Below are positions 18,908 through 59,005 of a stretch of 64,000 nucleotides of DNA, piece after piece. Positions within the stretch are counted from its first letter, which is position 1; every line of letters begins with the position of its first letter. This DNA comes from Rebecca billardiae RCC1528 (taxonomy: Eukaryota; Protista; Haptophyta): the NCBI GenBank assembly GCA_965240325.2, contig OZ251242.1, forward strand, positions 992,001 to 1,056,000. Direction: 5' to 3'. The notes under the pieces were generated by a model. The model was not told the origin of the DNA. It was given only the letters and a program-made list of their open reading frames with translations, and did not search any database. Both the position numbers and the translations under genes were made by a program.

Positions 18908-20737
18908 ATGGAGCCCTCGCGCAAGCGCTCGCTCGCGGACGACGGCGCCGCCGCCGCGTCCCCATTCTTCGAGATGCCGTGCGCGCTGTGCGGCGATCGT
19001 ATTGGGAGTCAGCCGTGGGCGCAGCTCGCGTGCGGCGACGAGCACGTCGCGCACAACGTGTGCCTCTTCCAGCGCGCGCTCGCGTCCAAGCGCTGCGTCG
19101 TGCGGTGCGGCCGGCCGGGGTGCAAGCGCGTGACGAAGGCGGCGTCGGCGAGGACGCAGTACGACGGCATTCACGAGCTGGGCACTCTGCGCCATGTCGC
19201 CGTCGCGACGTGCACAGGCTGCGCCGCGCCCCACGGGGCGACAGGCTTGCAGCGCGAGCCGCCGCCCAGCCACACGGCGGCAGCACCAACAGAGACAGCT
19301 GGCCTCACGCTGTGCGACCTGCCGACGGACGTGGTCGCGCGCATCCTCGGCTGGCTCGAGTGCGCGCATGATCTGGCGAGTACCAACGCCACGTCGCGCC
19401 TCTTCCGCGGCGCGCCCGGCGAACGCTCGCCGGTGGAGCACGCGCTGCGCGAGCGCGCGCGGCAGCGTGGGCACGAGGGCGCGCTGCCGGCGGCTCTCCC
19501 CGCGCACGCGTGCTCGTGGCGGGCGGAGCTGTTCGCGCGCGAGCGTGTGCTGGAGCATGCGGATGCGCACGCGTATGTGGTTGGGTGTGGCACTGATGAG
19601 GATGAACTTGCGATGTTCAGCGCGTTCGTGGACGCGTCTGGCGGGCTGCACACGTGCGGCGAGGAGTCTGGTGAGACAGGGCTGTGCGCGCCCGCTGCGC
19701 TGGGCCATCCGGAGCTGCAAGACTCGGCGGTCCTCGTGCCGACGCGCGTGGCATCGCTGTCGGCAGTGTGCATGCGCGCGGTGGCGGCTGGGCGTCGACA
19801 CATGCTCGCGCTGAGCGACGGTGGTGCCGTGTACGCGTGCGGTCAGAATGACTACGGTCAGCTGGGCCTGGGCGACAAGGAGGTGCGCCGAGTCTTCACC
19901 GCGCTGGGCATGAGCAGCACGGGGCTCGTCGTGGGCATCGCCGCTGGTGCGAAGCACAGCCTCGCGCTCACTGCCGCGGGCGGTGTGTACAGCTGGGGTT
20001 GTAGCGATTACGGCCAGCTCGGCCACGGCGACACTGAGAATCGGCTGGAGCCTGTGCGCATCGAGGCGCTGGACGGTGTGCGCGTGGGCGGCATGTCCGC
20101 TGGTTACGGGACCACGCTGCTGCTGTCGACGAGCGGCGCCGTGTACTCGTGCGGTGGCGGCGAAGCAGGCCGCCTCGGGCATGGCGACCAGCAAGATCTG
20201 CTTACGCCTCGGCGCATCGAGGCGCTGGAAGGCGTGCGCGCCGTGCACGTGAGCGCTGGCGATTATCACGGCCTGGTGGTGGATGCCACGGGCGGTGTGC
20301 ACTCGTTCGGGCGTGGGATGCGTGGTTGCCGTGGCCATGGTGACGAATCTGACGCACTCGTGCCCAGGCGCACCGAGGCGCTGCAGGGCGTGCGCATCGT
20401 GCGCGCCAGCGCTGGCAGTGAGTGCAGCGCGGTGATCGGCGCGGACGGCAGCGTGTACACCTTTGGCGCCAACGAGCACGGCTTGCTCGGCATCGGCTCA
20501 GCTGGTGCAGATCAGCTGCTTCCGGTGCGCGTGCACGCCCCAGCGCATGGCCAGCTGATGGACTGCTTTCTCGAGTACCGCCAGGCGCTTTGGATCACGT
20601 CGGATTGCGTTGCGCTCTCGTGTGGCAGGCAGTCTGCAGCGCTCGGCCACGGTGTGAGCTCTGTCGACGGGATGGCTGACCTCTTCTCTCCTGCGCGAAT
20701 CACGCAGCTGCCACCCCTGCGGCGCCGGGGTGCGTAG
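18908..20737 (+). CDS. RING-like/F-box/RCC1-repeat protein, copy 1 (609 aa)
   Basis: MEPSRKRS (NLS-like); C-x2-C-x13-C-x3-H-x2-H-x2-C-x14-C-x4-C; F-box LCDLPTDVVARILGWL..DL...ATSRLFR; about 7 RCC1 blades (AAGxxH..LAL..GxVYSWG.N..GQLGHG). Intronless. Confidence 0.9.
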   Translation: MEPSRKRSLADDGAAAASPFFEMPCALCGDRIGSQPWAQLACGDEHVAHNVCLFQRALASKRCVVRCGRPGCKRVTKAASARTQYDGIHELGTLRHVAVATCTGCAAPHGATGLQREPPPSHTAAAPTETAGLTLCDLPTDVVARILGWLECAHDLASTNATSRLFRGAPGERSPVEHALRERARQRGHEGALPAALPAHACSWRAELFARERVLEHADAHAYVVGCGTDEDELAMFSAFVDASGGLHTCGEESGETGLCAPAALGHPELQDSAVLVPTRVASLSAVCMRAVAAGRRHMLALSDGGAVYACGQNDYGQLGLGDKEVRRVFTALGMSSTGLVVGIAAGAKHSLALTAAGGVYSWGCSDYGQLGHGDTENRLEPVRIEALDGVRVGGMSAGYGTTLLLSTSGAVYSCGGGEAGRLGHGDQQDLLTPRRIEALEGVRAVHVSAGDYHGLVVDATGGVHSFGRGMRGCRGHGDESDALVPRRTEALQGVRIVRASAGSECSAVIGADGSVYTFGANEHGLLGIGSAGADQLLPVRVHAPAHGQLMDCFLEYRQALWITSDCVALSCGRQSAALGHGVSSVDGMADLFSPARITQLPPLRRRGA

Positions 20738-21066
20738 CACTCGGTGCGCGGTGGCGTGGAGCCAAGTCGCAACTACCGGCCGGCGCGTGCTCGTGGCAGC
20801 CGCCGATGGAGACGCAGGCGGCGCGTGACGGCACGTAAGCCGTATATTGATTGTCAGCGAGCAAACGCGGGTGCTCCGGCTGTCCTAGCCGGCAGCAGCA
20901 CATGACGATGATGAACGCCTTAGTACCCCCATACAGTGTATTCACGGGCGGCCGCGATACAGTCGTACAGACAGTACTGTACTGTACGCTGATGTACAAT
21001 CGACGACGAAATTCGCCGCCCAGAGGTCCACCACACGACCGCGCGCGCAGTCGAGGTCCGGACGAC

Positions 21067-22839
21067 ATGGAGCCCTCGCGCAAGCGCTCGCTCGTGGACG
21101 ACGGCGCCGCTGCCGCGTCCCAGGTCTTCGAGGTGCCGTGCGCGCTGTGCGGCGATCGTATTGGGAGCCAGCCGTGGGCGCAGCTCGCGTGCGGCGACGA
21201 GCACGTCGCGCACAACGTGTGCCTCTTCCAGCGCGCGCTCGCGTCCGAGCGCTGCGTCGTGCGGTGCGGCCGGCCGGGGTGCAAGCGCGTGACGAAGGCG
21301 GCGTCGGCGAGGACGCAGTACGACGGCATTCACGAGCTGGGCACTCTGCGCCATGTCGCCGTCGCGACGTGCACAGGCTGCGCCGCGCCGAACGAGTCGA
21401 CAGCCGCGCAGCGCGAGCCACCTCCCAGCGACACGGCGGCAGCGCCGACGGAGCCGGCTGGCCTCACGCTGTGCGACCTGCCGACGGACGTGGTGTCGCG
21501 CATCCTCGGCTGGCTCGAGTGCGCGCGTGATCTGGCGACTGCCAACGCCACGTCGCGCCTCTTCCGCGGCGCGCCCGGCGAACGCTCGCCGGTGGAGCAC
21601 GTTCTGCGCGAGCGCGCGCGGCAGCGCGGGCACGAGGGCGCGCTGCCGGCGGCTCTCCCCGTGCACGCGTGCTCGTGGCGGGCTGAGCTGTTCGCGCGCG
21701 AGCGTGTGCTGGAGCACGCGGATGCGTTCGCGTGCGTGGTTGGGTGTGGCACTGATGAGGATGAAATTGCGACGTTCAGCGCGTTCGTGGACGCATCGGG
21801 CGGGCTGCACACGTGCGGTGAGCAGTTTGGTCAGACAGGGCTGACGCGCGTGGCATCGCTCTCGGCAGTGCGCATGCGTGCGGTGGCTGCTGGCTATGAG
21901 CACCTGCTCGCGCTGAGCGACTGTGGTGCCGTGTACGCGTGCGGTCAGAATGACTACGGCCAGCTGGGCGTGGGCGACAAGGAGACGCGCCGTGTCTTCA
22001 CCGCGCTGGGCATGAGCAGCATGGGGCTCGTCGTGGGCATCGCCGCTGGTGCATACTACAGCCTTGCGCTCAGTGCTGCGGGTGGTGTGTACAGCTGGGG
22101 ATGGAACGAGTACGGCCAGCTCGGCCACGGCGACACTGAGGACCGGCTGGAGCCTGTGCGCATCGAGGCGCTGGACGGTGTGCGCGTGGGCGGCATGTCT
22201 GCTGGTTACGGGCACACACTGCTACTGTCGATGGGCGGTGCCGTGTACTCGTGCGGTGCCGGCCAAGCAGGCCGCCTCGGGCATGGCGACCAGCAACCCC
22301 TGCGCACGCCTCAGCGCATCGAGGCGCTGGAGGGCGTGCGCGCCGTGCATGTGAGCGCGGGCGAGGAGCACTGCCTGGTGGTGGATGCCACGGGCGGTGT
22401 GCACTCGTTCGGGTGGGGGGAGTCTGGTTGCCTTGGCCATGGTGACGACTCCGACACACTCGTGCCCAGGCGCATCGAGGCGCTGCAGGGCGTGCGCATC
22501 GTGCGCGCCAGCGCGGGCAGCCAGTGCAGCGCGGTGATGGGCGCGGACGGCAGCGTGTACGCGTTTGGCTCCAACGACCACGGCCAGCTCGGCATCGGCT
22601 CAGCTGGTGCAGATCAGCTGCTTCCGGTGCGCGTGCACGCCCCAGCGCATGGCCAGCTGGTGGACTGCTTTCTCGAGTACTGCAGGGCGCTTTGGATCAC
22701 GTCAGACGGCGGCGCGTACTCGTGTGGCAAGCAGTCTGCAGCGCTCGGCCACGATGTGAGCTCTGCCGACGGGATGCCCGACCTCGTCTCTCCTGCGCGC
22801 ATCGCGCAGCTGCCACCCCTGCTGCGCCGGGGTGCGTAG
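21067..22839 (+). CDS. RING-like/F-box/RCC1-repeat protein, copy 2 (590 aa; 19-aa in-frame deletion)
   Basis: Paralogue of copy 1 lacking CAPAALGH...VLVP at 21843/21844. Confidence 0.88.
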   Translation: MEPSRKRSLVDDGAAAASQVFEVPCALCGDRIGSQPWAQLACGDEHVAHNVCLFQRALASERCVVRCGRPGCKRVTKAASARTQYDGIHELGTLRHVAVATCTGCAAPNESTAAQREPPPSDTAAAPTEPAGLTLCDLPTDVVSRILGWLECARDLATANATSRLFRGAPGERSPVEHVLRERARQRGHEGALPAALPVHACSWRAELFARERVLEHADAFACVVGCGTDEDEIATFSAFVDASGGLHTCGEQFGQTGLTRVASLSAVRMRAVAAGYEHLLALSDCGAVYACGQNDYGQLGVGDKETRRVFTALGMSSMGLVVGIAAGAYYSLALSAAGGVYSWGWNEYGQLGHGDTEDRLEPVRIEALDGVRVGGMSAGYGHTLLLSMGGAVYSCGAGQAGRLGHGDQQPLRTPQRIEALEGVRAVHVSAGEEHCLVVDATGGVHSFGWGESGCLGHGDDSDTLVPRRIEALQGVRIVRASAGSQCSAVMGADGSVYAFGSNDHGQLGIGSAGADQLLPVRVHAPAHGQLVDCFLEYCRALWITSDGGAYSCGKQSAALGHDVSSADGMPDLVSPARIAQLPPLLRRGA

Positions 22840-23192
22840 CACTTGGTGCGCGGTGGCGTGGAGCCTAGTCACACGCAACTACCGGCCGGCGCGTGCTCGT
22901 GGCAGCCGCCGATGGAGACGCAGGCGGCGCGTGACGGCACGTAAGCCGTATATTGATGTCAGCGAGCAAACGCGGGTGCTCCGGCTGTCCTAGCAGGCAG
23001 CAGCACATGCCAATGATGAACGCCTTAGTACCCCCATACAGTATGAGTATCTGACAAGCGGGCGGCCGCGATACAGTCGTACAGACAGTACTGTACTGTA
23101 CGCTGTACAATCGACGACGAAATCCGCCGCGCCCAACGGTAAGAATCGCGATGACGACGCGAGGAGTGCGCAGAAAGCCTCACACCCACGAC

Positions 23193-25022
23193 ATGGAGCC
23201 CTCGCGCAAGCGCTCGCTCGTGGACGACGGCGCCGCCGCCGCGTCCCCGGTCTTCGAGGAGCCGTGCGCGCTGTGCGGCGATCGTATTGGCAGCCAGCCG
23301 TGGGCGCAGCTCGCGTGCGGCGAGGAGCACGTCGCGCACAACGTGTGCCTCTTCCAGCGCGCGCTCGCGTCCGAGCGCTGCGTCGTGCGGTGCGGCCGGC
23401 CGGGGTGCAAGCGCGTGACGAAGGCGGCGTCGGCGAGGACGCAGTACGACGGCATTCGCGAGCTGGGCACTCTGCGCCATGTCGCCGTCGCGACGTGCAC
23501 AGGCTGCGCCGCGCCGAATGAGTCGACAGCCGTGCAGCGCGAGCCGCCGCCCAGCCACACGGCGGCAGCACCAACAGAGACGGCTGGCCTCACGCTGTGC
23601 GACCTGCCGACGGACGTGGTCTCGCGCATCCTCGGCTGGCTCGAGTGCGCGCATGATCTGGCGAGTGCCAACGCCACGTCGCGCCTCTTCCGCGGCGCGC
23701 CCGGCGAACGCTCGCCGGTGGAGCACGCGCTGCGCGAGCGCGCGCGGCAGCGTGGGCACGAGGGCGCGCTGCCGGCGGCTCTCCCCACGGGCGCGTGCTC
23801 GTGGCGGGCGGAGCTATTCGCGCGCGAGCGTGTGCTGGAGCATGCGGATGCGCACGCGTGCGTGGTTGGGTCTGGCACTGATGAGGATGAAGCTGCGACG
23901 TTCAGCGCGTTCGTGGACGCATCGGGCGGGCTGCACACGTGCGGTGAGGAGGAGGATGAGACAGGGCTGTGCGCGCCCGCTGCGCTGGGCCATCCGGAGC
24001 TGCGCGAGTCAGCCGTCCTCGTGCCGACGCGCGTGGCATCGCTCTCGGCAGTGCGAATGCGTGCGGTGGCTGCTGGATGGTTCCATCTGCTCGCGCTGAG
24101 CGACGGTGGTGCCGTGTACTCCTGTGGGAACAATGCTTTAGGCCAGCTGGGCCTGGGCGACAAGGAGACGCGCCGTGTCTTCACCGCGCTGGGCATGAGC
24201 AGCATGGGGCTCGTCGTGGGCATCGCCGCTGGTGCGAGGCACAGCCTCGCGCTCACTGCTGCGGGTGGTGTGTACAGCTGGGGATGGAACGCGTACGACC
24301 AGCTCGGTCACGGCGACACTGAGAATCGGCTGGAGCCTGTGCGCATCGAGGCGCTGGACGGTGTGCGTGTGGGTGGCATGTCCGCGGGCTGGAAGCACAC
24401 GCTGCTGCTGTCGACGAGTGGCGCCGTGTACTCGTGCGGTGTCGGCCAAGCAGGCCGCCTCGGGCATGGCGACCAGAACACTCTGCGCACGCCTCAGCGC
24501 ATCGAGGCGCTGGAGGGCGTGCGCGCCGTGCACGTGAGCGCGGGCGACCAGCACAGCCTAGCGGTGGATGCCACTGGCGGCGTGCACACGTTTGGGCGTG
24601 GGGAGTCTGGTTGCCTTGGTCATGGTGACACCTCCACCGCACTCGTGCCCAGGCGCATCGAGGCGCTGCAGGGCGTGCGCATCGTGCGCGCCAGCGCGGG
24701 CTGTGATTTCAGTGCGGTGATGGGCGCGGACGGCAGCGTGTACACGTTTGGCTACAACGACCACGGCCAGCTCGGCATCGGCTCAGCTGGTGCAGATCAG
24801 CTGCTTCCGGTGCGCGTGCACGCCCCAGCGCATGGCCAGCTGGTGGACTGCTTTCTCGAGTACCGCCAGGCGCTTTGGATCACTGCAGACGGCGGCGCGT
24901 ACTCATGTGGCAGGCAGACGGCCGCGCTCGGCCACGGTGTGGGCTCTGACGACGACGTGGACGACCTCGTCTCTCCTGCGCGGATTGCGCAGCTGCCACC
25001 GCTGCGGCGCCGGGGTGCGTAG
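23193..25022 (+). CDS. RING-like/F-box/RCC1-repeat protein, copy 3 (609 aa)
   Basis: Same architecture; intact ORF from MEPSRKRS. Confidence 0.9.
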   Translation: MEPSRKRSLVDDGAAAASPVFEEPCALCGDRIGSQPWAQLACGEEHVAHNVCLFQRALASERCVVRCGRPGCKRVTKAASARTQYDGIRELGTLRHVAVATCTGCAAPNESTAVQREPPPSHTAAAPTETAGLTLCDLPTDVVSRILGWLECAHDLASANATSRLFRGAPGERSPVEHALRERARQRGHEGALPAALPTGACSWRAELFARERVLEHADAHACVVGSGTDEDEAATFSAFVDASGGLHTCGEEEDETGLCAPAALGHPELRESAVLVPTRVASLSAVRMRAVAAGWFHLLALSDGGAVYSCGNNALGQLGLGDKETRRVFTALGMSSMGLVVGIAAGARHSLALTAAGGVYSWGWNAYDQLGHGDTENRLEPVRIEALDGVRVGGMSAGWKHTLLLSTSGAVYSCGVGQAGRLGHGDQNTLRTPQRIEALEGVRAVHVSAGDQHSLAVDATGGVHTFGRGESGCLGHGDTSTALVPRRIEALQGVRIVRASAGCDFSAVMGADGSVYTFGYNDHGQLGIGSAGADQLLPVRVHAPAHGQLVDCFLEYRQALWITADGGAYSCGRQTAALGHGVGSDDDVDDLVSPARIAQLPPLRRRGA

Positions 25023-25434
25023 CGGACTCGGTGCGCGGTGCCGGTGGCGCGGAGCCAAGTCGCAACCGGCCGGCGCGTGCTCGTGGCAGCTGCCGATGGA
25101 GACGCAGGCGGCGCGTGACGGCACGTAAGCCGTAATTAGTGATGTCAGTGAGCAAGCGCGGGTGCTCCGGCTGTCCTAGCAGGCAGCAGCACATGACACT
25201 GACATGAACGCCTTAGTACCCTCATACAGTATGAGTATCTGACAAGAGGGCGGCCGCGATACAGTCGTACAGACAGTACAGTTTACTACAGTAAGAATAC
25301 GACCGAGACTGCGCACACAGCTTACGTGTACAATCGATGAGGAAATCCGCTGCCCAACCAAGGGAGTGCCCAACGGTTGCTCATCGCGATGACGACGCGA
25401 GTCGGAGTGAGCCTCACACCGTCACACCCGCCAC

Positions 25435-27267
25435 ATGGAGCCCTCGCGCAAGCGCTCCCTCGTGGACGACGGCGCCGCCGCCGCGTCCCAGGTCTTCGAG
25501 GTGCCGTGCGCGCTGTGCGGCGATCGTATTGGCAGCCAGCCGTGGGCGCAGCTCGCGTGCGGCGACGAGCACGTCGTGCACAACGTGTGCCTCTTCCAGC
25601 GCGCGCTCGCGTCCGAGCGCTGCGTCGTGCGGTGCGGCCGGCCGGGGTGCAAGCGCGTGACGAAGGCGGCGTCGGCGAGGACGCAGTACGACGGCATTCA
25701 CGAGCTGGGCACTCTGCGCCATGTCGCCGTCGCGACGTGCACAGGCTGCGCCGCGCCGAACGAGTCGAAAGCCGTGCAGCGCGAGGCACCGCCCGGGTAT
25801 ACCGCGGCAACGCCGACAGCGCCGGCTGGCCTCACGCTGTGCGACCTGCCGACGGACGTGGTCTCGCGCATCCTCGGCTGGCTCGAGTGCGCGCATGATC
25901 TGGCGAGTGCCAACGCCACGTCGCGCCTCTTCCGCGGCGCGCCCGGCGAACGCTCGCCGGTGGAGCACGTTCTGCGCGAGCGCGCGCGGCAGCGCGGGCA
26001 CGAGGGCGCGCTGCCGGCGGCTCTCCCCGTGCACGCGTGCTCGTGGCGGGCGGAGCTGTTCGCGCGCGAGCGTGTGCTGGAGCACGCGGATGCGTTCGCG
26101 TGCGTGGTTGAGTGTGGCACTGATGAGGATGAAGTTGCGATGTTCAGCGTGTTCGTGGACGCATCGGGCGGGCTGCACACGTGCGGTGAGCAGTTTGGTC
26201 AGACAGGGCTGTGCGCGCCCGCTGCGCTGGGCCATCCGCAGCTGCGCGACTCGGCGGTCCTCGTGCCGACGCGCGTGGCATCGCTCTCGGCAGTGCGCAT
26301 GCGCGCGGTGGCGGCTGGGCTTCGACACATGCTCGCGCTGAGCGACGGTGGTGCCGTGTACGCGTGCGGTCAGAATGACTACGGCCAGCTGGGCGTGGGC
26401 GACACGGAGATGCGCCGTGTCTTCACCGCGCTGGGCATGAGCAGCATGGGGCTCGTCGTGGGCATCGCCGCTGGTGCATACTACAGCCTTGCGCTCAGTG
26501 CTGCGGGTGGTGTGTACAGCTGGGGATGGAACGAGTACGGCCAGCTCGGTCACGGTGACACTGAGGACCGGCTGGAGCCTGTGCGCATCGAGGCGCTGCA
26601 CGGTGTGCGCATGGGCGGCATGTCCGCTGGTTACGGGCACACGCTGCTGCTCTCGACGAGCGGTGCCGTGTACTCGTGCGGTACCGGCTACGATGGCGGC
26701 CTCGGGCATGGCGACCAGCCAGATCTGCTTACGCCTCGGCGCATCGAGGCGCTGGAAGGTGTGCGCGCCGTGCACGTGAGCGCGGGCGACGCTCACAGCC
26801 TGGTGGTGGATGCCACGGGCGGTGTGCACTCGTTCGGGTGTGGGGATTCTGGTTGCCTTGGCCATGGTGACACCTCCAACGCACTCTCGCCCAGGCGCAT
26901 CGAGGCGCTGCAGGGCGTGCGCATCGTGCGCGCCAGCGCGGGCTGGTGCAGCAGCGCGGTGATGGGCGCGGACGGCATCGTGTACACGTTTGGCAACAAC
27001 GACCACGGCCAGCTCGGCATCGGCTCAGCTGGTGGGAATCAGCTGCTTCCGGTGCGCGTGCACGCCCCAGCGCACGGCCAGCTGGTGGACTGCTTTCTCG
27101 AGTACCGCCAGGCGCTTTGGGTCGCGTCAGACGGCTGCGCGTACTCGTGCGGCAGGCAGTCGGCCGCGCTCGGCCATGGCGTGAACTCTGACGACGGGAT
27201 GGACGACCTCGTCTCTCCTGCGCGGATTGCGCTGCTGCCACCCCTGCGCCGGCGCCGGGGTGCGTAG
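25435..27267 (+). CDS. RING-like/F-box/RCC1-repeat protein, copy 4 (610 aa)
   Basis: Same architecture; intact ORF. Confidence 0.9.
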   Translation: MEPSRKRSLVDDGAAAASQVFEVPCALCGDRIGSQPWAQLACGDEHVVHNVCLFQRALASERCVVRCGRPGCKRVTKAASARTQYDGIHELGTLRHVAVATCTGCAAPNESKAVQREAPPGYTAATPTAPAGLTLCDLPTDVVSRILGWLECAHDLASANATSRLFRGAPGERSPVEHVLRERARQRGHEGALPAALPVHACSWRAELFARERVLEHADAFACVVECGTDEDEVAMFSVFVDASGGLHTCGEQFGQTGLCAPAALGHPQLRDSAVLVPTRVASLSAVRMRAVAAGLRHMLALSDGGAVYACGQNDYGQLGVGDTEMRRVFTALGMSSMGLVVGIAAGAYYSLALSAAGGVYSWGWNEYGQLGHGDTEDRLEPVRIEALHGVRMGGMSAGYGHTLLLSTSGAVYSCGTGYDGGLGHGDQPDLLTPRRIEALEGVRAVHVSAGDAHSLVVDATGGVHSFGCGDSGCLGHGDTSNALSPRRIEALQGVRIVRASAGWCSSAVMGADGIVYTFGNNDHGQLGIGSAGGNQLLPVRVHAPAHGQLVDCFLEYRQALWVASDGCAYSCGRQSAALGHGVNSDDGMDDLVSPARIALLPPLRRRRGA

Positions 27268-27470
27268 CACTCGGTCTCGGTGCGCGGTGGCGCGGGGCCG
27301 TCGCAACCGGCCGGCGCGTGCTCGTGGCAGCCGCCGATGGAGACGCCGAGGCGGCGCGTCAGACGGCAGCACGTGAGCCGTATATAATATATATATATAT
27401 ATATTGCTATACTGATGATGATGATGATGTATGATAGATGCTATAACTATATAGCTCTAGGTCGTCAAGC

Positions 27471-30173: not shown

Positions 30174-30398
30174 GGCGCCACGGCGCAGAAACGATGCGGG
30201 TGCGAGGCCGTCTTGGTGTAACAGTTTTTATTTTCGCCGCGATATCACCACGGCGGAATAAATGCTTCCGGGTCCGGAAGAGTGGTGGCAGCCGCGGCGC
30301 CCGGACGCGACGCGGTCTCACCGCTCCGGCAAGCGTACCAAGGCAAACTAAACGTCAAAGCAGCACCCTCGTGGCCGTGGGCACGCCCGCCAATCCTC

Positions 30399-30749
30399 AT
30401 GCCAGGGCGCGCGGGCCCTCGCAAGAAGAAGTGCGTGAAGAAGGTGCACCGCGAGAGCAAGACGAAGAACTACGTCAAGGACGTCGACCAGATCCACGAC
30501 GAGCTCGCCAAGGAGTCCTCAGACCCGTCGCGCAAGCGCGAGCGGCCGGTCGATCCAGACCTGCCCGGTTTGGGGCAGTACTACTGCGCCGAGACTGACA
30601 GGCACTTCATCTCACAGGACGCACTCGACGCACACATGCGCTCGAAGGCCTTCAAGAAGAGGCGGAAAGAGCTCGAGAAGGAGCCCTTCTCGCAGCTCGA
30701 GGCCGAGCTCGCAGCAGGCAAGGGTATGCCGGACAAAGGCTATGGATAA
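30399..30749 (+). CDS. ZNF593: ZNF593/Bud20 pre-60S ribosome biogenesis factor
   Basis: KDVDQIHDEL, DPDLPGLGQYYC...RHF.....L..HMRSK..KKR.K.L..EPFSQLEAELAAG. Confidence 0.9.
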   Translation: MPGRAGPRKKKCVKKVHRESKTKNYVKDVDQIHDELAKESSDPSRKRERPVDPDLPGLGQYYCAETDRHFISQDALDAHMRSKAFKKRRKELEKEPFSQLEAELAAGKGMPDKGYG

Positions 30750-30823
30750 TGCAGTCCGCCTTAGATTCGCCTGTCAGCCCTGGCAGGGCCAGCACATCAT
30801 GGATAGATGGACGACTGCGCTGT

Positions 30824-30858
<35 letters not shown>
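30824..30858. repeat. (CA)n microsatellite
   Basis: Directly visible. Confidence 0.95.
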
Positions 30859-30860
<2 letters not shown>

Positions 30861-31103
30861 CATCAGATACTGTGGTGACGCCGCACAATGCGGCAATGGC
30901 GGCCGTGCGGCCGTCAGCCTGCCGGCCCGCGACCGGCCGCGCCGCGGGCCGCCGGGCCCTGAGCGCGTTGCCGCTAAGTAGTGACTTGCCAAGTTGCCGC
31001 AATGGCCCACTTTGGCGGGCGGCGTTGCCGCCCGGTGCGTGCGGCCCATCGCCGGCATCGCATTCGCTGCCGCCTCTCGGGCCGTCGCCACTGTTCGGAC
31101 TCG

Positions 31104-33305: not shown

Positions 33306-33719
33306 GGCGAGATGCCCGGGCACCGGGCGGTCGCGGCGTCGCGCCGCTTGACGCTGAGCCCGGACGTGGTCCCCGGCCAGCCGTCCCAGAAAGCCTCTGA
33401 GCCCGTCTTCGGCTCAGCGGGCTCAAACCTTCGGAGCGAAGGTTTTGAGCTCAGTGACTATGAAATGGGCTGGCTACGAATATAGCTGCGGGTATTTTTC
33501 AATACCCGGGGCCTTGATGTAGGGGGCTGGGACGGGTGGACTGCCGAACGGCGAGCGGCGGGGCCGGCCGCCCCAGCCACGTCCGCGCCCGTCACAGCTT
33601 GACACTATGACAGCGAGGCTTCATCAGCTGGCGGAGTCAGCCGCACCGGCGGCAGCCTGCGGTCTACGGTCCATTGGCCCCAGCGGCACGGCCACGGGCA
33701 CCGTCAGTGACCGTGGCTG

Positions 33720-35905: not shown

Positions 35906-36022
35906 AGCCGACCGACCGCCGACCTTGCTGTGGGTTGAGGGTGTTCATGAGCCTGGGGTGTTCCGGTTTGCCTTCCCGGGTTCACGGTTGGCCGCGTTTG
36001 TTCTGCTCTGTCTCCGCTCGGG

Positions 36023-44681: not shown

Positions 44682-44712
<31 letters not shown>

Positions 44713-50325: not shown

Positions 50326-52155
50326 ATGGAGCCCTCGCGCAAGCGCTCGCTCGCGGACGACGGCGCCGCCGCCGCGTCCCCATTCTTCGAGATGCCGTGC
50401 GCGCTGTGCGGCGATCGTATTGGGAGCCAGCCGTGGGCGCATCTCGCGTGCAGCGAGGAGCACGTCGCGCACAACGTGTGCCTCTTCCAGCGCGCGCTCG
50501 CGTCCGAGCGCTGCGTCGTGCGGTGCGGCCGGCCGGGGTGCAAGCGCGTGACGAAGGCGGCGTCGGCGAGGACGCAGTACGACGGCATTCACGAGCTGGG
50601 CACTCTGCGCCATGTCGCCGTCGCGACGTGCACAGGCTGCGCCGAGCCGAACGAGTCGACAGCCGCGCAGCGCGAGCCGCCGCCCAGCGACATTGCGGGA
50701 ATGCCGACAGGGACAGCAGGCCTCACGCTGTGCGACCTGCCGACGGACGTGGTCGCGCGCATCCTCGGCTGGCTCGAGCGTGCGCATGATCTGGCCAGCG
50801 CCAACGGCACCTCGCGCCTCTTCCGCGGCGCGCCTGGCGAGCGCTCGCCGGTGGAGCACGCACTGCTCGAGCGCGCGCAGCAGCGTGGGCATGAGGGCGC
50901 GCTGCCGGCGGCTCTCCCCGCGCACGCGTGCTCGTGGCGGGCGGAGCTGTTCGCGCGCGAGCGTGTGCTGGAGCATGCGGATGCGCACGTGTGCGTGGGC
51001 GTATGCGGCAGCGCGTCCGCTGCGGGTGGGGCTTTCAGCGCGTTTGTGGACGCATCGGGCGGGCTGCACACATGCGGCGAGGAGTCTGGTGAGACAGGGC
51101 TGTGCGCGCCCGCTGCACTGGGCCATCCGGAGCTGCGCGACTCGGCCGTTCTCGTGCCGACGCGCGTGGCATCGCTCTCGGCGGTGCGCGTGCGTGCGAT
51201 GGCCGCTGGCTACCGACACCTGCTCGCGCTGAGCGACGGTGGTGCCGTGTACGCGTGCGGTCAGAATGACTACGGCCAGCTGGGCCTGGGCGACAAGCAG
51301 GCGCGCCGTGTCTTCACCGCGCTGGGCATGAGCAGCATGGGGCTCGTCGTGGGCATCGCCGCTGGTGGGAATCACAGCCTCGCGCTCAGTGCTGCGGGCG
51401 GCGTGTACAGCTGGGGATGGAACGAGTACGGCCAGCTCGGCCACGGCGACGTTGAGGACCGGCTGGAGCCTGTGCGCATCGAGGCGCTGGACGGTGTGCG
51501 CGTGGGCGGCATGTCCGCGGGCTGCGGGCACACGCTGCTGCTGTCGACGAGCGGCGCCGTGTACTCGTGCGGGTGGGGCGCCGCAGGCAACCTCGGGCAT
51601 GGCGACCAGCAAACTCTGCGCACGCCTTGGCGCATCGAGGCGCTGGCGGGCGTGCGCGCCGTGCACGTGAGCGCAGGCGATCAGCACTGCCTGGTGGTGG
51701 ATGCCACTGGCGGTGTGCACTCGTTCGGGCGTGGGATGCGTGGTTGCCTTGGCCATGGTGATTATTCCAACGTGCTCGTGCCCAGGCGCATCGAGGCGCT
51801 GCAGGGCGTGCGCATCGTGCGCGCCAGCGCGGGCTGGTGCAGCAGCGCGGTGATGTGCGCGGACGGCAGCGTGTACACGTTTGGCTACAACGCGCACGGC
51901 CAGCTCGGCATCGGCTCAGCTGGTTGGAATCAGCTGCTTCCGGTGCGCGTGCACGCCCCAGCGCACGGCCAGCTGGTGGACTACTTTCTCGACTACTGCC
52001 AGGCGCTTTGGATCACGTCAGACGGCGGCGCGTACTCGTGTGGCAGGCAGTCTGCAGCGCTCGGCCATGGCGTGAGCTCTGCCGAGTGGGTGGACGAGCT
52101 CGTCTCTCCTGCGCGGATTGCGCAGCTGCCACCGCTGCTGCGCCGGGGTGCGTAG
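50326..52155 (+). CDS. RING-like/F-box/RCC1-repeat protein, copy 5 (609 aa)
   Basis: Same architecture; first gene of the second array. Confidence 0.9.
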   Translation: MEPSRKRSLADDGAAAASPFFEMPCALCGDRIGSQPWAHLACSEEHVAHNVCLFQRALASERCVVRCGRPGCKRVTKAASARTQYDGIHELGTLRHVAVATCTGCAEPNESTAAQREPPPSDIAGMPTGTAGLTLCDLPTDVVARILGWLERAHDLASANGTSRLFRGAPGERSPVEHALLERAQQRGHEGALPAALPAHACSWRAELFARERVLEHADAHVCVGVCGSASAAGGAFSAFVDASGGLHTCGEESGETGLCAPAALGHPELRDSAVLVPTRVASLSAVRVRAMAAGYRHLLALSDGGAVYACGQNDYGQLGLGDKQARRVFTALGMSSMGLVVGIAAGGNHSLALSAAGGVYSWGWNEYGQLGHGDVEDRLEPVRIEALDGVRVGGMSAGCGHTLLLSTSGAVYSCGWGAAGNLGHGDQQTLRTPWRIEALAGVRAVHVSAGDQHCLVVDATGGVHSFGRGMRGCLGHGDYSNVLVPRRIEALQGVRIVRASAGWCSSAVMCADGSVYTFGYNAHGQLGIGSAGWNQLLPVRVHAPAHGQLVDYFLDYCQALWITSDGGAYSCGRQSAALGHGVSSAEWVDELVSPARIAQLPPLLRRGA

Positions 52156-52601
52156 CACTCGGACTCGGTACACGGTGGCGCGGAGCCAATAAGTCGCAAC
52201 CGGCCGGCGCGTGAGACTCGTGGTAGCCGCCGATGGAGACGCAGCCGGCGGCCGGCGTGACGGCACTCGTGAGCCGTATCTAGTGATGCCAGTGGCAGTG
52301 AGCAAACGCGGGTGCTCCGGCTGTCCGAGCAGGCAACAGCACATGACACTGATGAACGCAGCCTTAGTACCCCCATGATACAGTATGACAGTACAGTATC
52401 TAACAAGCGGGCCGCCGCGATACAGTCGTCAGACAGTAGCTACTGTGCACGTTAAAACATAGAGTAGTAGTATAGTAAACTGTAGCTACGCTGTACAATC
52501 GAAGACTACGAAATCCGTTGCCCATCAACGGAACGGTCATCGTGATCATCAACTGATCATGAACACACCGCGCGCAGCGCCGAGCTCCCGCTCCGGACGA
52601 C

Positions 52602-54395
52602 ATGGAGCCCTCGCGGAAGCGCTCGCGCGCGGACGATTGCGCCGCCGCCGTGTCCCCGGTCTTCGAGGTGCCGTGCGCGCTGTGCGGCGATCGCATTGGC
52701 AGCCAGCCGTGGGCGCAGCTCGCGTGCGGCGACGAGCACGTCGCACACAACGTGTGCCTCTTCCAGCGCGCGCTCGCGTCCGAGCGCTGCGTTGTGCGGT
52801 GCGGCCGGCCGGGGTGCAAGCGCGTGACGAAGGCGGCGTCGGCGAGGACGCAGTACGACGGCATTCACGAGCTGGGCACTCTGCGCCATGTCGCTGCCGC
52901 GACGTGCACAGGCTGCGCCGCGCCGAATGAGTCGACAGCCGTGCAGCACGATCTGCCATGCCACGACGTTGCCACTGTCACGCTGTGTGACCTGCCGTCG
53001 GACGTGATCTCGCGCATTCTCGGCTGGCTCGAGTGCGCGCAGGATCTGGCCAGCCTGAACGGCACCTCGCGCCTCTTCCGCGGCACGCCTGCCGGCCGCT
53101 CGCTGGTGGAGCACGCGCTGCGCGAGCGCGCGCGCCAGCGCGGGCATGAGGGCGCGCTGCCACCGCCTCCCTCGTGGCGGGCGGAGCTGTTCGCGCGCGA
53201 GCGCGTGCTCGAGCTTGCGGCTGCGCACGCGTGCGTGGCTGGGTGTGGCACTGATGAGGATGAACTTGTGACTTTGAGCGCGTTCGTGGATGCATCGGGC
53301 GGGCTGCACACGTGTGGTGAGGAGTCTAGTGAGACAAGGCTGTGCACGCCCGCTGCGCTGGGCCATCCGGAGCTGCGTGGCTCAGCCGTCCTCGTGCCGA
53401 CGCGCGTGGCATCGCTCTCTGCGGTGCGCGTGCGTGCGGTGGCCGCTGGCTACCGACACCTGCTCGCGCTGAGCGACGGTGGGGCCGTGTACTCCTGTGG
53501 TGAGAATGGCCACGGCCAGCTGGGCCTGGGCGACAAGGAGACGCGCCGTGTCTTCACCGCGCTGGGCATGAGCAGCATGGGGCTCGTCGTGGGCATCGCC
53601 GCTGATGCATACCACAGCCTTGCGCTCAGTGCTGCGGGTGGTGTGTACAGCTGGGGAATGAACCACAGCGGCCAGCTCGGCCACGGCGACACTGAGGACC
53701 GGCTGGAGCCTGTGCGCATCGAGGCGCTGGACGGTGTGCGTGTGGGTGGCATGTCTGCGGGCAGCTGGCACACGCTGCTGCTGTCGACGAGCGGCGCCGT
53801 GTACTCGTGCGGTGTCGGCGACGATGGCCGCCTCGGGCATGGCAACCAGCAAGATCTGCTTACGTCGCAGCGCATCGAGGCGCTGGAGGGCGTGTGCGCC
53901 GTGCACGTCAGCGCGGGCGACGATCACAGCCTGGTGGTGGATGCCACGGGCGGTGTGCACTCGTTCGGGCGTGGGACGTGTGGTTGCCTTGGCCATGGTG
54001 ACGAGTCCGCCACACTCGTGCCCAGGCGCGTCGAGGCGCTGCAGGGCGTGCGCATCGTGCGCGCCAGCGCAGGCTGTTTCAGCAGCGCGGTGATGGGCGC
54101 GGACGGCAGCGTGTACACGTTTGGCTCCAACACAAGCGGCCAGCTCGGCATCGGCTCAGCTGGTGCAGATCAGCTGCTTCCGGTGCGCGTGCACGCCCCA
54201 GCGCACGGCCATCTGGTGGACTGCTTTCCCGAGTACCGCCAGGCGCTTTGGATCACTGCAGACGGCGGCGCGTACTCATGTGGCAGGCAGACGGCCGCGC
54301 TCGGCCACGGTGTGAGCTCTGACGACGGGGTGGACGACCTCGTCTCTCCTGCGCGGATTGCGCAGCTGCCACCCCTGCGGCGCCGGGGTGCGTAG
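52602..54395 (+). CDS. RING-like/F-box/RCC1-repeat protein, copy 6 (597 aa)
   Basis: Same architecture; subgroup linker VQHDLPCHDVAT. Confidence 0.9.
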   Translation: MEPSRKRSRADDCAAAVSPVFEVPCALCGDRIGSQPWAQLACGDEHVAHNVCLFQRALASERCVVRCGRPGCKRVTKAASARTQYDGIHELGTLRHVAAATCTGCAAPNESTAVQHDLPCHDVATVTLCDLPSDVISRILGWLECAQDLASLNGTSRLFRGTPAGRSLVEHALRERARQRGHEGALPPPPSWRAELFARERVLELAAAHACVAGCGTDEDELVTLSAFVDASGGLHTCGEESSETRLCTPAALGHPELRGSAVLVPTRVASLSAVRVRAVAAGYRHLLALSDGGAVYSCGENGHGQLGLGDKETRRVFTALGMSSMGLVVGIAADAYHSLALSAAGGVYSWGMNHSGQLGHGDTEDRLEPVRIEALDGVRVGGMSAGSWHTLLLSTSGAVYSCGVGDDGRLGHGNQQDLLTSQRIEALEGVCAVHVSAGDDHSLVVDATGGVHSFGRGTCGCLGHGDESATLVPRRVEALQGVRIVRASAGCFSSAVMGADGSVYTFGSNTSGQLGIGSAGADQLLPVRVHAPAHGHLVDCFPEYRQALWITADGGAYSCGRQTAALGHGVSSDDGVDDLVSPARIAQLPPLRRRGA

Positions 54396-54887
54396 CGGAC
54401 TCGGTGCGCGGTGCCGGTGGCGCGGAGCCAAGTCGCAACCGGCCGGCGCGTCGGCGTGCTCGTGGCAGCTGCCGATGGAGACGCAGGCGGCGCGTGACGG
54501 CACGTGAGCCGTGTAGTGATGTCAGTGAGCAAACGCGGGTGCTCCGGCTGTCCGACGAGCAGGCAACAGCACATGACCATGATGAACGCCTTAGTACCCC
54601 CATACAGTATGAGTATCTAACAAGCGGGCAGCCACGATACAGTCGTCAGACAGTACTGTGCACGTTAAAACATAGTAGTACAGTTTACTAATAAGAATTA
54701 AGAGACGCACACAGCTCAGGCAGGCGAGATTGACGCCCGCCAACTGTCACCGCCCATAGTAAACTGTACGCTGTACAATCGACGACGAAATCCGTCGCCC
54801 AACCCGAACGGTCATCGTGATCAACTGACCATCATGATCATGAACAACACCGCACGCAGCGCCGAGCTCCCGCGCGCTCCGGACGAC

Positions 54888-56687
54888 ATGGAGCCCTCGC
54901 GGTCGCGCAAGCGCTCGCGCGCGTGCGACGGCGCCGCCGCCGCGTCCCCGGTCTTCGAGGTGTCGTGCGCGTTGTGCGGCGATCGCATTGGCAGCCAGCC
55001 GTGGGCGCAGCTCGCGTGCGGCGACGAGCACGTCGCACACAACGTGTGCCTCTTCCAGCGCGCGCTCGCGTCCGAGCGCTGCGTCGTGCGGTGCGGCCGG
55101 CCGGGGTGCAAGCGCGTGACGAAGGCGGCGTCGGCGAGGACGCAGTACGACGGCATTCACGAGCTGGGCACTCTGCGCCATGTCGCCGTCGCGACGTGCA
55201 CAGGCTGCGCCGCGCCGAATGAGTCGACAGCCGTGCAGCACGATCTGCCATGCCACGACGTTGCCACCATCACGCTGTGTGACCTGCCGATGGACGTGAT
55301 CTCGCGCATTCTCGGCTGGCTCGAGTGCGCGCAGGATCTGGCCAGCCTGAACGGCACCTCGCGCCTCTTCCGCGGCACGCCTGCCGGCCGCTCGCCGGTG
55401 GAGCACGCGCTGCGCGAGCGCGCGCGCCAGCGCGGGCATGAGGGCGCGCTGCCGGCGCCTCCCTCGTGGCGGGCGGAGCTGTTCGCGCGCGAGCGCGTGC
55501 TCGAGCTTGCGGCTGCGCACGCGTGCGTGGCTGGGTGTGGCACTGATGAGGATGAACTTGTGACTTTGAGCGCGTTCGTGGATGCATCGGGCGGGCTGCA
55601 CACGTGTGGTGAGGAGTCTAGTGAGACAGGGCTGTGCACGCCCGCTGCGCTGGGCCATCCGGAGCTGCGTGGCTCAGCCGTCCTCGTGCCGACGCGCGTG
55701 GCATCGCTCTCGGCGGTGCGCATGCGTGTGGTGGCCGCTGGCTACCACCACCTGCTCGCGCTGAGCGACGGTGGGGCCGTGTACTCCTGTGGTGAGAATG
55801 GCCACGGCCAGCTGGGCCTGGGCGACAAGGAGACGCGCCGTGTCTTCACCGCGCTGGGCATGAGCAGCATGGGGCTCGTCGTGGGCATCGCCGCTGGTGC
55901 ATACTACAGCCTTGCGCTCAGTGCTGCGGGTGGTGTGTACAGCTGGGGATCGAACGATCACGACCAGCTTGGCCACGGCGACACTGAGGACCGGCTGGAG
56001 CCTGCGCGCATCGAGGCGCTGGACGGTGTGCGCGTGGGCGGCATGTCCGCGGGTGGCGTGCACACACTGCTGCTGACCATGGGCGGTGCCGTGTACTCGT
56101 GCGGTGACGGCAGAGCAGGCCGCCTCGGGCATGGCAACCAGCAAAGTCTGCGCACGCCTCAGCGCATCGAGGCGCTGGAGGGCGTGCGCGCCGTGCACGT
56201 GAGCGCGGGCGACACTCACAGCCTGGTGGTGGATGCCACGGGCGGTGTGCACTCGTTTGGGCGTGGCTCGTTTGGCTGCCTTGGCCATGGTGATGACTCC
56301 GACGCACTCGTGCCCAGGCGCATTGATGCGCTGCACGGCGTGCGCATCGTGCGCGCCTGCGCGGGCACTGAGTGCAGCGCGGTGATGGGCGCGGACGGCA
56401 GCGTGTACACGTTTGGCTCCAACGACCACGGCCAGCTCGGCATCGGCTCAGCTGGTGCGGATCAGCTGCTTCCGGTGCGCGTGCACGCCCCAGCGCATGG
56501 CCAGCTGGTGGATTGCTTTCTCGAGTGGCGCCAGGCGCTCTGGATCACTGCAGACGGCGGCGCGTACTCATGTGGCAGGCAGACGGCCGCGCTCGGCCAC
56601 GGTGTGAGCTCTGACGACGGGGTGGACGACCTCGTCTCTCCTGCGCGGATTGCGCAGCTGCCACCCCTGCGGCGCCGGGGTGCGTAG
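54888..56687 (+). CDS. RING-like/F-box/RCC1-repeat protein, copy 7 (599 aa)
   Basis: Same architecture; MEPSRSRKRS start. Confidence 0.9.
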   Translation: MEPSRSRKRSRACDGAAAASPVFEVSCALCGDRIGSQPWAQLACGDEHVAHNVCLFQRALASERCVVRCGRPGCKRVTKAASARTQYDGIHELGTLRHVAVATCTGCAAPNESTAVQHDLPCHDVATITLCDLPMDVISRILGWLECAQDLASLNGTSRLFRGTPAGRSPVEHALRERARQRGHEGALPAPPSWRAELFARERVLELAAAHACVAGCGTDEDELVTLSAFVDASGGLHTCGEESSETGLCTPAALGHPELRGSAVLVPTRVASLSAVRMRVVAAGYHHLLALSDGGAVYSCGENGHGQLGLGDKETRRVFTALGMSSMGLVVGIAAGAYYSLALSAAGGVYSWGSNDHDQLGHGDTEDRLEPARIEALDGVRVGGMSAGGVHTLLLTMGGAVYSCGDGRAGRLGHGNQQSLRTPQRIEALEGVRAVHVSAGDTHSLVVDATGGVHSFGRGSFGCLGHGDDSDALVPRRIDALHGVRIVRACAGTECSAVMGADGSVYTFGSNDHGQLGIGSAGADQLLPVRVHAPAHGQLVDCFLEWRQALWITADGGAYSCGRQTAALGHGVSSDDGVDDLVSPARIAQLPPLRRRGA

Positions 56688-57075
56688 CGGACTCGGTGCG
56701 CGGTGCCGGTGGCGCGGAGCCAAGTCGCAACCGGCCGGCGCGTGCTCGTGGCAGCTGCCGATGGAGACGCAGCGGCGGCGCGTGACGGCACGTGAGCCGG
56801 GTAGTGATGTCAGTGAGCAAACGCGGGTGCTCCGGCTGTCCGATGAGCAGGCAACTACAGCACATGACAATGATGAACGCCTTAGTACCCCCATACAGTA
56901 TGAGTATCTAACAAGCGGGCACTCGGGGCAGCCACGATACAGTCGTCAGACAGTACTGTGCACGTTAACATAGTAGTAGTAAACTGTACGCTGTACAATC
57001 GACGACGAAATCCGTCGCCCAACCCGAACGGTCATACACCGCACGCAGCGCCGAGCTCCCGCGCGCTCCGACGAC

Positions 57076-58875
57076 ATGGAGCCCTCGCGGTCGCGCAAGC
57101 GCTCGCGCGCGTGCGACGGCGCCGCCGCCGCGTCCCCGGTCTTCGAGGTGCCGTGCGCGCTGTGCGGCGATCGCATTGGCAGCCAGCCGTGGGCGCAGCT
57201 CGCGTGCGGCGACGAGCACGTCGCGCACAACGTGTGCCTCTTCCAGCGCGCGCTCGCGTCCGAGCGCTGCGTCGTGCGGTGCGGCCGGCCGGGGTGCAAG
57301 CGCGTGACGAAGGCGGCGTCGGCGAGGACGCAGTACGACGGCATTCACGAGCTGGGCACTCTGCGCCATGTCGCCGTCGCGACGTGCACAGGCTGCGCCG
57401 CGCCGAATGAGTCGACAGCCGTGCAGCACGATCTGCCATGCCACGACGTTGCCACCATCACGCTGTGTGACCTGCCGATGGACGTGATCTCGCGCATTCT
57501 CGGCTGGCTCGAGTGCGCGCAGGATCTGGCCAGCCTGAACGGCACCTCGCGCCTCTTCCGCGGCACGCCTGCCGGCCGCTCGCCGGTGGAGCACGCGCTG
57601 CTCGAGCGCGCGCGTCAGCGCGGGCATGAGGGCGCGCTGCCGGCGCCTCCCTCGTGGCGGGCGGAGCTGTTCGCGCGCGAGCGCGTGCTGGAGCTTGCGG
57701 CTGCGCACGCGTGCGTGGCTGGGTGTGGCACTGATGAGGACAAAGTTGCGACTTTGAGCGCGTTCGTGGACGCATCGGGCGGGCTGCACACGTGTGGTGA
57801 GGAGTCTGGTGAGACAGGGCTGTGCGCGCCCGCTGCGCTGGGCCATCCGCAGCTGCGCAACTCGGCGGTCCTCGTGCCGACGCGCGTGGCATCGCTCTCG
57901 AGGGTGTGCATACGTGCGGTGGGTGCTGGGCTTGGTCACCTGCTCGCGCTGAGCGACTGTAGCGCCGTGTACGCGTGTGGTCAGAATGATTGCGGCCAGC
58001 TGGGCGTGGGCGACAAGGAGACGCGCCGTGTCTTCACCGCGCTGGGCATGAGCAGCATGGGGCTCGTCGTGGGCATCGCCGCTGGTTATCTTCACAGCCT
58101 CGCGCTCACTGCAGCGGGCGGTGTGTACAGCTGGGGATGGAACAGGTACGGCCAGCTCGGCCACGGCGACACTGAGAACCGGCTGGAGCCTGTGCGCATC
58201 GAGGCGCTGCACGGCGTGCGCGTGGGCGGCATGTCCGCGGGCGGCTGGCACACGCTGCTGCTCTCGACTTGTGGCGCCGTGTACTCGTGCGGTGGCGGCG
58301 ACGATGGCCGCCTCGGGCATGGCGACCAGCAAGATCTGCGCACGCCGCAGCGCATCGAGGCGCTGGAGGGCGTGCGCGCCGTGCACGTGAGCGCGGGCGA
58401 TGGTCACAGCCTGGTGGTGGATGCCACTGGCGGTGTGCACTCGTTCGGGCCGGGGGATTCTGGTTGCCTTGGCCATGGTGACAAATCCAACGTACTCGTG
58501 CCCAGGCGCATCGAGGCGCTGCAGGGCGTGCGCATCGTGCGCGCCAGCGCGGGCTGTGCGTGCAGCGCGGTGATGGGCGCGGACGGCAGAGTGTACACGT
58601 TTGGCTCCAACACAAGCGGCCAGCTTGGCATCGGCTCAGCTGGTGAGGATCAGCTGCTTCCGGTGCGCGTGCACGCCCCAGCGCACGGCCAGCTGGTGGA
58701 CTGCTTTCCCGACTACTGCCAGGCGCTTTGGATCGCGTCAGACGGCGGCGCGTACTCGTGTGGCACGCAGTCCGCCGCGCTTGGCCACGGCGTGAGCTCT
58801 GACGACGGGATGGACGACCTCGTCTCTCCTGCGCGGATTGCGCAGCTGCCACCCCTGCGGCGCCGGGGTGCGTAG
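57076..58875 (+). CDS. RING-like/F-box/RCC1-repeat protein, copy 8 (599 aa)
   Basis: Same architecture; intact ORF. Confidence 0.9.
   Translation: MEPSRSRKRSRACDGAAAASPVFEVPCALCGDRIGSQPWAQLACGDEHVAHNVCLFQRALASERCVVRCGRPGCKRVTKAASARTQYDGIHELGTLRHVAVATCTGCAAPNESTAVQHDLPCHDVATITLCDLPMDVISRILGWLECAQDLASLNGTSRLFRGTPAGRSPVEHALLERARQRGHEGALPAPPSWRAELFARERVLELAAAHACVAGCGTDEDKVATLSAFVDASGGLHTCGEESGETGLCAPAALGHPQLRNSAVLVPTRVASLSRVCIRAVGAGLGHLLALSDCSAVYACGQNDCGQLGVGDKETRRVFTALGMSSMGLVVGIAAGYLHSLALTAAGGVYSWGWNRYGQLGHGDTENRLEPVRIEALHGVRVGGMSAGGWHTLLLSTCGAVYSCGGGDDGRLGHGDQQDLRTPQRIEALEGVRAVHVSAGDGHSLVVDATGGVHSFGPGDSGCLGHGDKSNVLVPRRIEALQGVRIVRASAGCACSAVMGADGRVYTFGSNTSGQLGIGSAGEDQLLPVRVHAPAHGQLVDCFPDYCQALWIASDGGAYSCGTQSAALGHGVSSDDGMDDLVSPARIAQLPPLRRRGA

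Positions 58876-59002: not shown

Positions 59003-59005
<3 letters not shown>

Follow-up and report, generated by a model that had tools for sequence, protein, structure and literature searches.

Tandem genes for probable F-box/RCC1 substrate receptors with a hypervariable propeller face in Rebecca billardiae

The haptophyte Rebecca billardiae RCC1528 carries, in a 64,000-nucleotide stretch of contig OZ251242.1 (assembly GCA_965240325.2, positions 992,001 to 1,056,000), eight closely related genes arranged in two tandem arrays. We refer to this stretch as the window and give positions counted from its first letter. In each of the encoded proteins a Cys/His finger is followed by an F-box-like motif, then by a helical linker and a seven-bladed RCC1 propeller, and the copies differ most strongly in a small set of propeller loop residues. 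We propose that the genes form a germline tandem family, probably encoding substrate receptors of cullin-RING (SCF-type) ubiquitin ligases, in which diversifying selection acts on the RCC1 face and exchange between paralogues reshuffles it. A first-pass annotation, made from the letters of the window, had described the family as an antibody-like hypervariable RING/F-box/RCC1 repertoire; the results presented here sustain much of that description, qualify its domain assignments and give no footing to the comparison with antibodies.

Gene arrays and protein architecture

A tblastn search of the window with copy 4 as the query returned eight full-length copies and no fragments. The copies lie head-to-tail in two arrays of four genes (18908-27267 and 50326-58875) separated by a gap of 23 kb, every gene being on the + strand. 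All eight genes are intronless, with frames of about 600 codons open from the initial Met to the stop, which bears out the eight paralogues in two tandem arrays of the first-pass annotation. The genes, an example of a spacer and the domains of the copy chosen for modelling are as follows (aa, amino acids; ORF, open reading frame).

18908-20737, + strand: copy 1, first gene of array 1; 609 aa, intact ORF, with Pfam RCC1 (six times), WD40_RLD and F-box-like
20738-21066, + strand: example of a spacer, repeated together with the gene
21067-22839, + strand: copy 2; 590 aa, with a 57-nt in-frame deletion
23193-25022, + strand: copy 3; 609 aa
25435-27267, + strand: copy 4, last gene of array 1; 610 aa, the copy modelled with AlphaFold2
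25507-25650, + strand: Cys/His finger of copy 4, residues 25-72, RING-H2-like
25837-25935, + strand: F-box-like motif of copy 4, residues 135-167, PF12937
26095-27240, + strand: seven-bladed RCC1-like propeller of copy 4, residues 221-602
50326-52155, + strand: copy 5, first gene of array 2; 609 aa
52602-54395, + strand: copy 6; 597 aa
54888-56687, + strand: copy 7; 599 aa
57076-58875, + strand: copy 8, last gene of array 2; 599 aa

The repeat unit measures about 2.1-2.3 kb and includes spacers of 330-450 bp, which are homologous across both arrays (77-99% identity over ungapped columns) and contain numerous indels. Beyond the arrays the homology extends over 35 nt on the upstream side and about 150 nt on the downstream side, and duplication of the whole four-gene block is therefore unsupported beyond the repeat unit. 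A (TA)n microsatellite is found about 110-130 nt past the stop of the last gene in both arrays (~27381-27404 and ~59002-59072), and the homology of the array ends stops there. The deletion in copy 2 (junction between 21843 and 21844) removes 19 residues, comprising the blade-1 loop and most of the last strand of that blade; copy 2 may be impaired or may represent a structural variant.

The propeller is the most clearly defined part of the protein. Repeated RCC1 units are about 51 residues in length, and PF00415 (RCC1) matches the copies in six stretches with E = 1e-63 to 1e-66, while PF25390 scores 244-276 bits against a cut-off of 150. The AlphaFold2 model of copy 4 shows seven four-stranded blades (28 strands), and its predicted local distance difference test (pLDDT) value is above 90 in the propeller and below 50 at the N-terminus. 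Foldseek matches to this model include UVR8, HERC2, RPGR and RCC1 (E = 1e-24 to 1e-38), of which UVR8 is the best (template modelling score 0.92 by target, 30% identity).

The motif preceding the propeller is, on profile evidence gathered across the family, acceptable as an F-box. The window copies themselves score 22.3 bits with PF12937 (F-box-like; E = 1e-4), under the Pfam cut-off of 24.3 bits, so that the F-box of the first-pass annotation stands for the family and falls short of the threshold for the copies taken singly. PF12937 is matched by nine of ten aligned family members (best 5.8e-10) and PF00646 by two, and relatives from other samples, at 38-52% identity, have the same motif followed by the same linker. 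When the family profile was compared with the PDB, the top eight matches were all F-box proteins (E = 0.017-0.14); the matches of the F-box-region profile comprise FBXO3, FBXO31, FBXO22, FBH1, cyclin F, AnkB and FBXW7. The Leu-Pro signature is invariant across the family alignment (L10 and P11), and the copy 4 model places three short helices here (residues 140-148, 153-162 and 164-167; pLDDT 77-88).

The N-terminal finger follows the pattern C-x2-C-x13-C-x3-H-x2-H-x2-C-x14-C-x4-C, and its eight ligands (C25, C28, C42, H46, H49, C52, C67 and C72) are invariant in all eight copies and in a relative from another sample, L003. RING-H2 fingers are spaced C-x2-C-x(9-39)-C-x(1-3)-H-x(2-3)-H-x2-C-x(4-48)-C-x2-C; the spacings of the finger all fall inside this RING-H2 (C3H2C3) range except that of the last pair, which is x4 and not x2. 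The ligand pattern makes a RING identity plausible. Searches with Pfam, structure-sequence comparison and Foldseek gave no significant RING profile or RING structure match: zf-RING_2 was sub-threshold at E = 0.86-2.8, zf-RING_16 reached E = 0.061 for L003, and the Arkadia RING matched non-significantly at E = 0.48. A separate model of the finger had a pLDDT of 52 and no Foldseek match below E = 2, its top matches (PHD/PZP and RING) not being counted as evidence, and its language-model neighbours were RING clusters (0.86-0.91), which we treat as a lead only. Therefore, of the RING claimed in the first-pass annotation, the eight near-C3H2C3 ligands are retained and a significant match to known RING domains is not. 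With the same Pfam model the true RING-H2 of the gene adjacent to array 1 reaches 43 bits, which indicates that the finger of the copies is highly divergent.

A word-indexed homologue search with the finger region (residues 1-128) found nothing, and HMMER, run exhaustively over 1.8 billion representatives, yielded one true relative (P0121); the other match, P0122, was rejected as a spurious repeat protein. The relative is a standalone ORF of 134 residues (L003:1405-1809, + strand; Logan ERR14847151) with 52% identity and with no F-box or propeller behind it. It adjoins a CS-domain gene and belongs to another GC-rich organism. An F-box/RCC1 relative from the same samples (P0001; L001 and L002) is without the finger. 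As the finger stands alone in the one case and is missing in the other, its join to the F-box looks like a lineage-specific fusion.

Variable loops of the propeller and their evolution

In the protein alignment of the eight copies, 418 of 612 columns are invariant and pairwise identity is 83-90%. Against this background, 25 columns contain four to seven different residues among the eight copies, and pairwise identity at these columns is 8-36% as opposed to 87-93% in the rest of the propeller. The near-identical framework with strongly varying patches reported in the first-pass annotation is thus reproduced, and its nine variable strings (AG-xx-H, IAA-x4, SWG-x4, MSAG-x3, SCG-x4, VSAG-xx-H, FG-x4, AG-x3-S and FG-xNxx) are exact in the alignment. 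The columns variable within array 1 share 13 positions with those variable within array 2, against an expectation of about 1.8. In copy 4 numbering the hypervariable codons are the following.

Residues 234, 272, 296, 297, 316, 326, 349, 365, 367, 400, 401, 417 and 419 of copy 4, + strand: hypervariable codons
Residues 430, 453, 469, 471, 472, 480, 482, 504, 505, 521, 523 and 534 of copy 4, + strand: hypervariable codons, continued

Rather than being scattered over the structure, all 25 columns fall in two loop classes, namely the strand1-strand2 hairpin turns (AG-x-x-H) and the strand3-strand4 loops, where they occupy the residue after WG, CG or FG and the x-N-x-x and GD-x-x-x positions. The 165 strand residues and the 76 residues in the remaining two classes of loop contain none (Fisher p = 1e-12). 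They are distributed over blades 1-6 and concentrated on blades 2-6. In an up-and-down beta-meander alternate loops share a face, and the confinement of the variable columns to alternate loops therefore restricts the variation to one face of the propeller. The HMMER alignment with UVR8 matches the AG-x-x-H pair to W233/R234, W285/R286 and W337/R338, the residue after WG to W94/W198/W250/W302, and one GD-x-x-x position to D107. The seven aligned Trp residues of UVR8 are interfacial, and the Trp of the preceding WG belongs to a buried ring (PMC7455749). Strand topology and this alignment together support the view that the variable face corresponds to the UVR8 interaction face, as the first-pass annotation had suggested in placing the variable residues on one interaction face. 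At the variable sites Trp is enriched tenfold, Tyr fivefold and Asp, Glu, Asn and Thr about twofold, and Gly, Ala, Leu, Val, Ile and Pro are depleted; Trp, Tyr and Asp/Glu are typical of binding hot spots.

Across whole genes the ratio of non-synonymous (dN) to synonymous (dS) divergence is about 0.6. As a guard against circularity, variable columns were picked in one array and measured in the other, by a procedure that needs no tree. At these cross-validated sites dN is 0.58-0.59 and local dS 0.32-0.34 (ratio 1.75-1.84); measured against the background dS of 0.13-0.15 the ratio is 3.9-4.5 (confidence interval 2.5-7.3), and in the remaining propeller columns it is 0.44-0.53. Site models were fitted with custom codon-likelihood code (GY94/F3x4, IQ-TREE trees, branch-length proportions fixed from M0). 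M2a was preferred over M1a with twice the log-likelihood difference (2dlnL) at 230 on one tree and 112 on eight segment trees, assigning about 3.3% of codons to a class with omega (dN/dS) of 11-17. Across these and the dual-rate fits described below, 58-66% of codons have omega 0.01-0.04. In the N-terminal half, an equally recombining control, 2dlnL was 1.2 and 0, compared with 206 and 145 for the propeller alone. Around the variable codons dS rises as well (0.40 at the codons, 0.29 one codon off, 0.20 two off and 0.105-0.135 further away), and a separate synonymous-rate class was fitted for this reason. This dual-rate fit gave the fast class a synonymous rate (alpha) of 1.8-2.3 and a non-synonymous rate (beta) of 10-16, and a fast but neutral class (beta = alpha) was rejected with 2dlnL = 42 on one tree and 19.4 on the segment trees (p <= 1e-5). 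In some 20 loop codons non-synonymous change runs roughly six times as fast as synonymous change, and about 60% of the codons are under strong purifying selection. The diversifying selection invoked in the first-pass annotation is thus upheld at the loop sites, where omega exceeds 1 by cross-validated dN/dS, M2a and the dual-rate test.

The copies are, in addition, recombinant mosaics. A test of the pairwise homoplasy index type gave 0.335 against a permutation mean of 0.465 (standard deviation 0.007; p < 0.001), and the nearest paralogue of every copy switches repeatedly along the gene, also across arrays. Loop sets are shuffled blade by blade among the genes, also from one array to the other; for instance, RGMR recurs in copies 1 and 5, WCS in copies 4 and 5 and SNTS in copies 6 and 8, which are otherwise different. 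The finger behaves in another fashion. Nucleotides 76-300 of the coding sequence (18908-19200 and equivalents) are 98-100% identical in all eight copies of both arrays, this finger stretch being far more alike than the remaining gene or the spacers, and dS is 0.02-0.07 in the finger and the stretch after it compared with 0.15-0.18 elsewhere in the same genes. This points to homogenisation of the finger module by gene conversion, that is, to concerted evolution across 23 kb.

Interpretation, alternatives and genomic surroundings

If the proteins are substrate receptors, as we consider probable, the F-box would dock on Skp1, the variable face would bind targets that change quickly themselves, and target binding would lead to ubiquitination. 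Provided that the invariant finger is a true RING-H2, it could recruit a ubiquitin-conjugating enzyme (E2) directly or mediate assembly. Candidate targets would be viral, parasite or transposon proteins, or else self/non-self or mating factors. A more specific version of the proposal is that of an algal innate-immunity-like repertoire, in which the finger/F-box/RCC1 receptors would bind giant-virus or parasite proteins on the variable face and mark them for ubiquitin-dependent destruction, the finger recruiting the E2 and new specificities arising by positive selection and exchange of blade cassettes. We assign this version only a small chance, and an antiviral role is speculation. The term "antibody-like" overstates the case and can serve as a metaphor only, since the family is germline-encoded and diversified by substitution and exchange between paralogues, and nothing in the sequence suggests somatic diversification.

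Several points weigh against our proposal. The F-box score of the window copies is sub-threshold, as noted above. The variable face is assigned from strand topology and the UVR8 alignment and not from atomic coordinates. The bootstrap confidence interval of the cross-validated ratio to local dS just touches 1 (~0.9-4.6), and synonymous divergence is itself up two- to threefold in and beside the variable codons. The likelihood code is self-written and allows single-nucleotide steps only, so that multi-nucleotide changes could inflate the test, and the data are eight recombining sequences with fixed segment boundaries. No RNA run is among those listed for copy 4, and transcription of the copies is putative; the sole run sharing words with copy 4 (share 0.14, kind unknown) yielded 21 short low-depth contigs, mostly 90-95% alike, which would come from paralogues or from a relative.

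Four alternative explanations were weighed. Relaxed constraint combined with gene conversion, in which unconstrained loops and a homogenised scaffold mimic diversifying selection, draws on the fact that gene conversion is real here and on the low dS of the framework alongside higher dS near the variable codons, as if conversion spared small islands. Neutral evolution, however, offers no way for dN to overtake dS, and M1a is rejected; the cross-validated dN is 1.8 times local dS and about four times background dS, and the tenfold use of Trp and fivefold use of Tyr is non-random. We therefore consider relaxed constraint improbable. The gradient of dS away from the variable codons, together with the observation that about half of the codon pairs at variable sites differ by two or three nucleotides, would fit locally targeted mutagenesis, such as hypermutation or a short-patch templated process acting on the loop codons without diversifying selection. 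This explanation is quite improbable in our judgement, as the rejection of beta = alpha speaks against it and the surroundings of the arrays showed no template repeats, no reverse transcriptase and no other machinery for diversification. High linked dS is also expected where selection retains long-kept loop variants and gene conversion homogenises the rest of the gene.

Two further alternatives concern function. The proteins might not be ubiquitin-ligase adaptors at all, the propeller being a binding module, or one of the guanine nucleotide exchange factor type, for mating/self-recognition, cytoskeletal or chromatin partners, with the F-box-like helix and the finger serving assembly. The sub-threshold F-box, the unproven RING and the many non-ligase roles of RCC1 propellers (UVR8, RCC1, RPGR, Nek9) are in agreement with this possibility, whereas the LP-containing F-box signature is kept in distant relatives that pass the Pfam thresholds and the PDB profile search gives F-box proteins only; on balance we regard it as unlikely. 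That the arrays consist of decaying or silent copies, pseudogenes drifting apart, could be suggested by the 19-residue deletion in blade 1 of copy 2 and by the putative status of transcription. It is highly improbable, given that all eight frames are intact over about 600 codons, that 58-66% of the codons evolve at omega 0.01-0.04 and that the variation is limited to 25 columns. The reading of the genes as a family of probable substrate receptors with a diversifying face is the one that we retain.

The G+C content of the window is 62-77%. This composition and the abundance of single-exon genes would fit a haptophyte of the Pavlovales such as Diacronema, in which the G+C content is 73% and 45% of the genes have a single exon (PMC8379373). 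The gene directly upstream of array 1 encodes an E3 ligase whose RING-H2 scores 43 bits with zf-RING_2 and 36.5 bits with zf-rbx1 and is followed by a long Pro/Gln/Gly/Ala-rich tail. An ORF of 1782 codons (15389-20737) was rejected as a single gene, being a stop-free run-through from this RING-H2 gene into copy 1 in GC-rich DNA. The region between the arrays (28152-45298) contains cellular genes unrelated to the family. A recent viral insertion was considered and rejected, because the composition of the arrays is that of the host genes around them and the genes between the arrays are ordinary cellular ones. The neighbouring features are as follows.

16547-16672, + strand: RING-H2 finger of the E3-ligase gene directly upstream of array 1, within ORF 15389-17950
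28152-30173, - strand: leucine-rich repeat (LRR) protein, between the arrays
31107-33323, - strand: beta-lactamase-fold protein with a ShK domain, between the arrays
34790-35905, - strand: methyltransferase, between the arrays
38045-39712, - strand: CEP104-like TOG protein, between the arrays
43937-45298, + strand: CDC45 (E = 1.5e-117), between the arrays

Relation to known systems

Full-text literature searches, in which "RCC1" in algal papers matched mostly culture-collection strain numbers, retrieved no publication on an algal F-box/RCC1 family with hypervariable positions. We place the family among the fast-evolving F-box adaptors, as a variant of those already known. The nearest parallels are the F-box families of nematodes and plants. 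In Caenorhabditis elegans the fbxa, fbxb and fbxc families are expanded and positively selected (Thomas 2006, as cited in PMC8120010). The nematode and plant families resemble the window copies in being large, tandemly clustered and lineage-specific and in combining a conserved F-box with positively selected sites in the substrate-recognition domain, and for them a role against fast-changing non-self proteins is proposed but unproven. They use FTH, FBA, kelch or LRR domains for recognition, whereas the family described here uses an RCC1 propeller. The window copies are also distinguished by the Cys/His finger before the F-box, by about 20 register-fixed variable positions and by a GC-rich algal host.

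The animal protein FBXO24 has the same order of domains, its F-box preceding an RCC1-type propeller to which the substrates of an SCF ligase bind (PMC10932545). Unlike the window copies, it is encoded by a single-copy conserved gene and has neither a hypervariable face nor an N-terminal finger; it is absent from the top structural matches of copy 4, so no specific kinship is shown. The closest solved propeller is that of UVR8, the plant UV-B receptor, and the variable residues lie at its interfacial Trp/Arg/Asp positions. UVR8, however, is without an F-box or finger, its interface residues are conserved, and its Trp triad motif GWRHT is not retained in the window copies. In RCBTB1/2 and HERC1-6 the RCC1-like propeller is, similarly, the partner-binding part of a ubiquitin-ligase protein, but these proteins employ other ligase-coupling domains (BTB and HECT) and do not form multigene hypervariable repertoires. 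The LRRs of plant nucleotide-binding leucine-rich repeat receptors and the peptide-binding sites of the major histocompatibility complex share with the family a conserved scaffold carrying exposed binding residues with omega above 1, as well as high dS at linked sites and exchange of sequence among tandem paralogues. They have no homology to it, and the likeness does not carry an immune function over.

To our knowledge, the question of what the fast-evolving nematode and plant F-box families target has stood for twenty years. The family described here offers a compact and structurally well-defined case, in which about 20 register-fixed contact residues vary on a rigid, confidently modelled scaffold. 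As only these contact residues vary, the specificities would lend themselves to experimental read-out or exchange. Natural populations of haptophyte-like algae are controlled by giant viruses, and we know of almost nothing on the intracellular defence of these algae. Should our proposal hold, an RCC1 propeller would for the first time be seen to carry a repertoire of this kind, which would also have no precedent in haptophyte-like algae, and a near-invariant finger fused to an F-box would be an unusual ligase architecture among the systems compared here.

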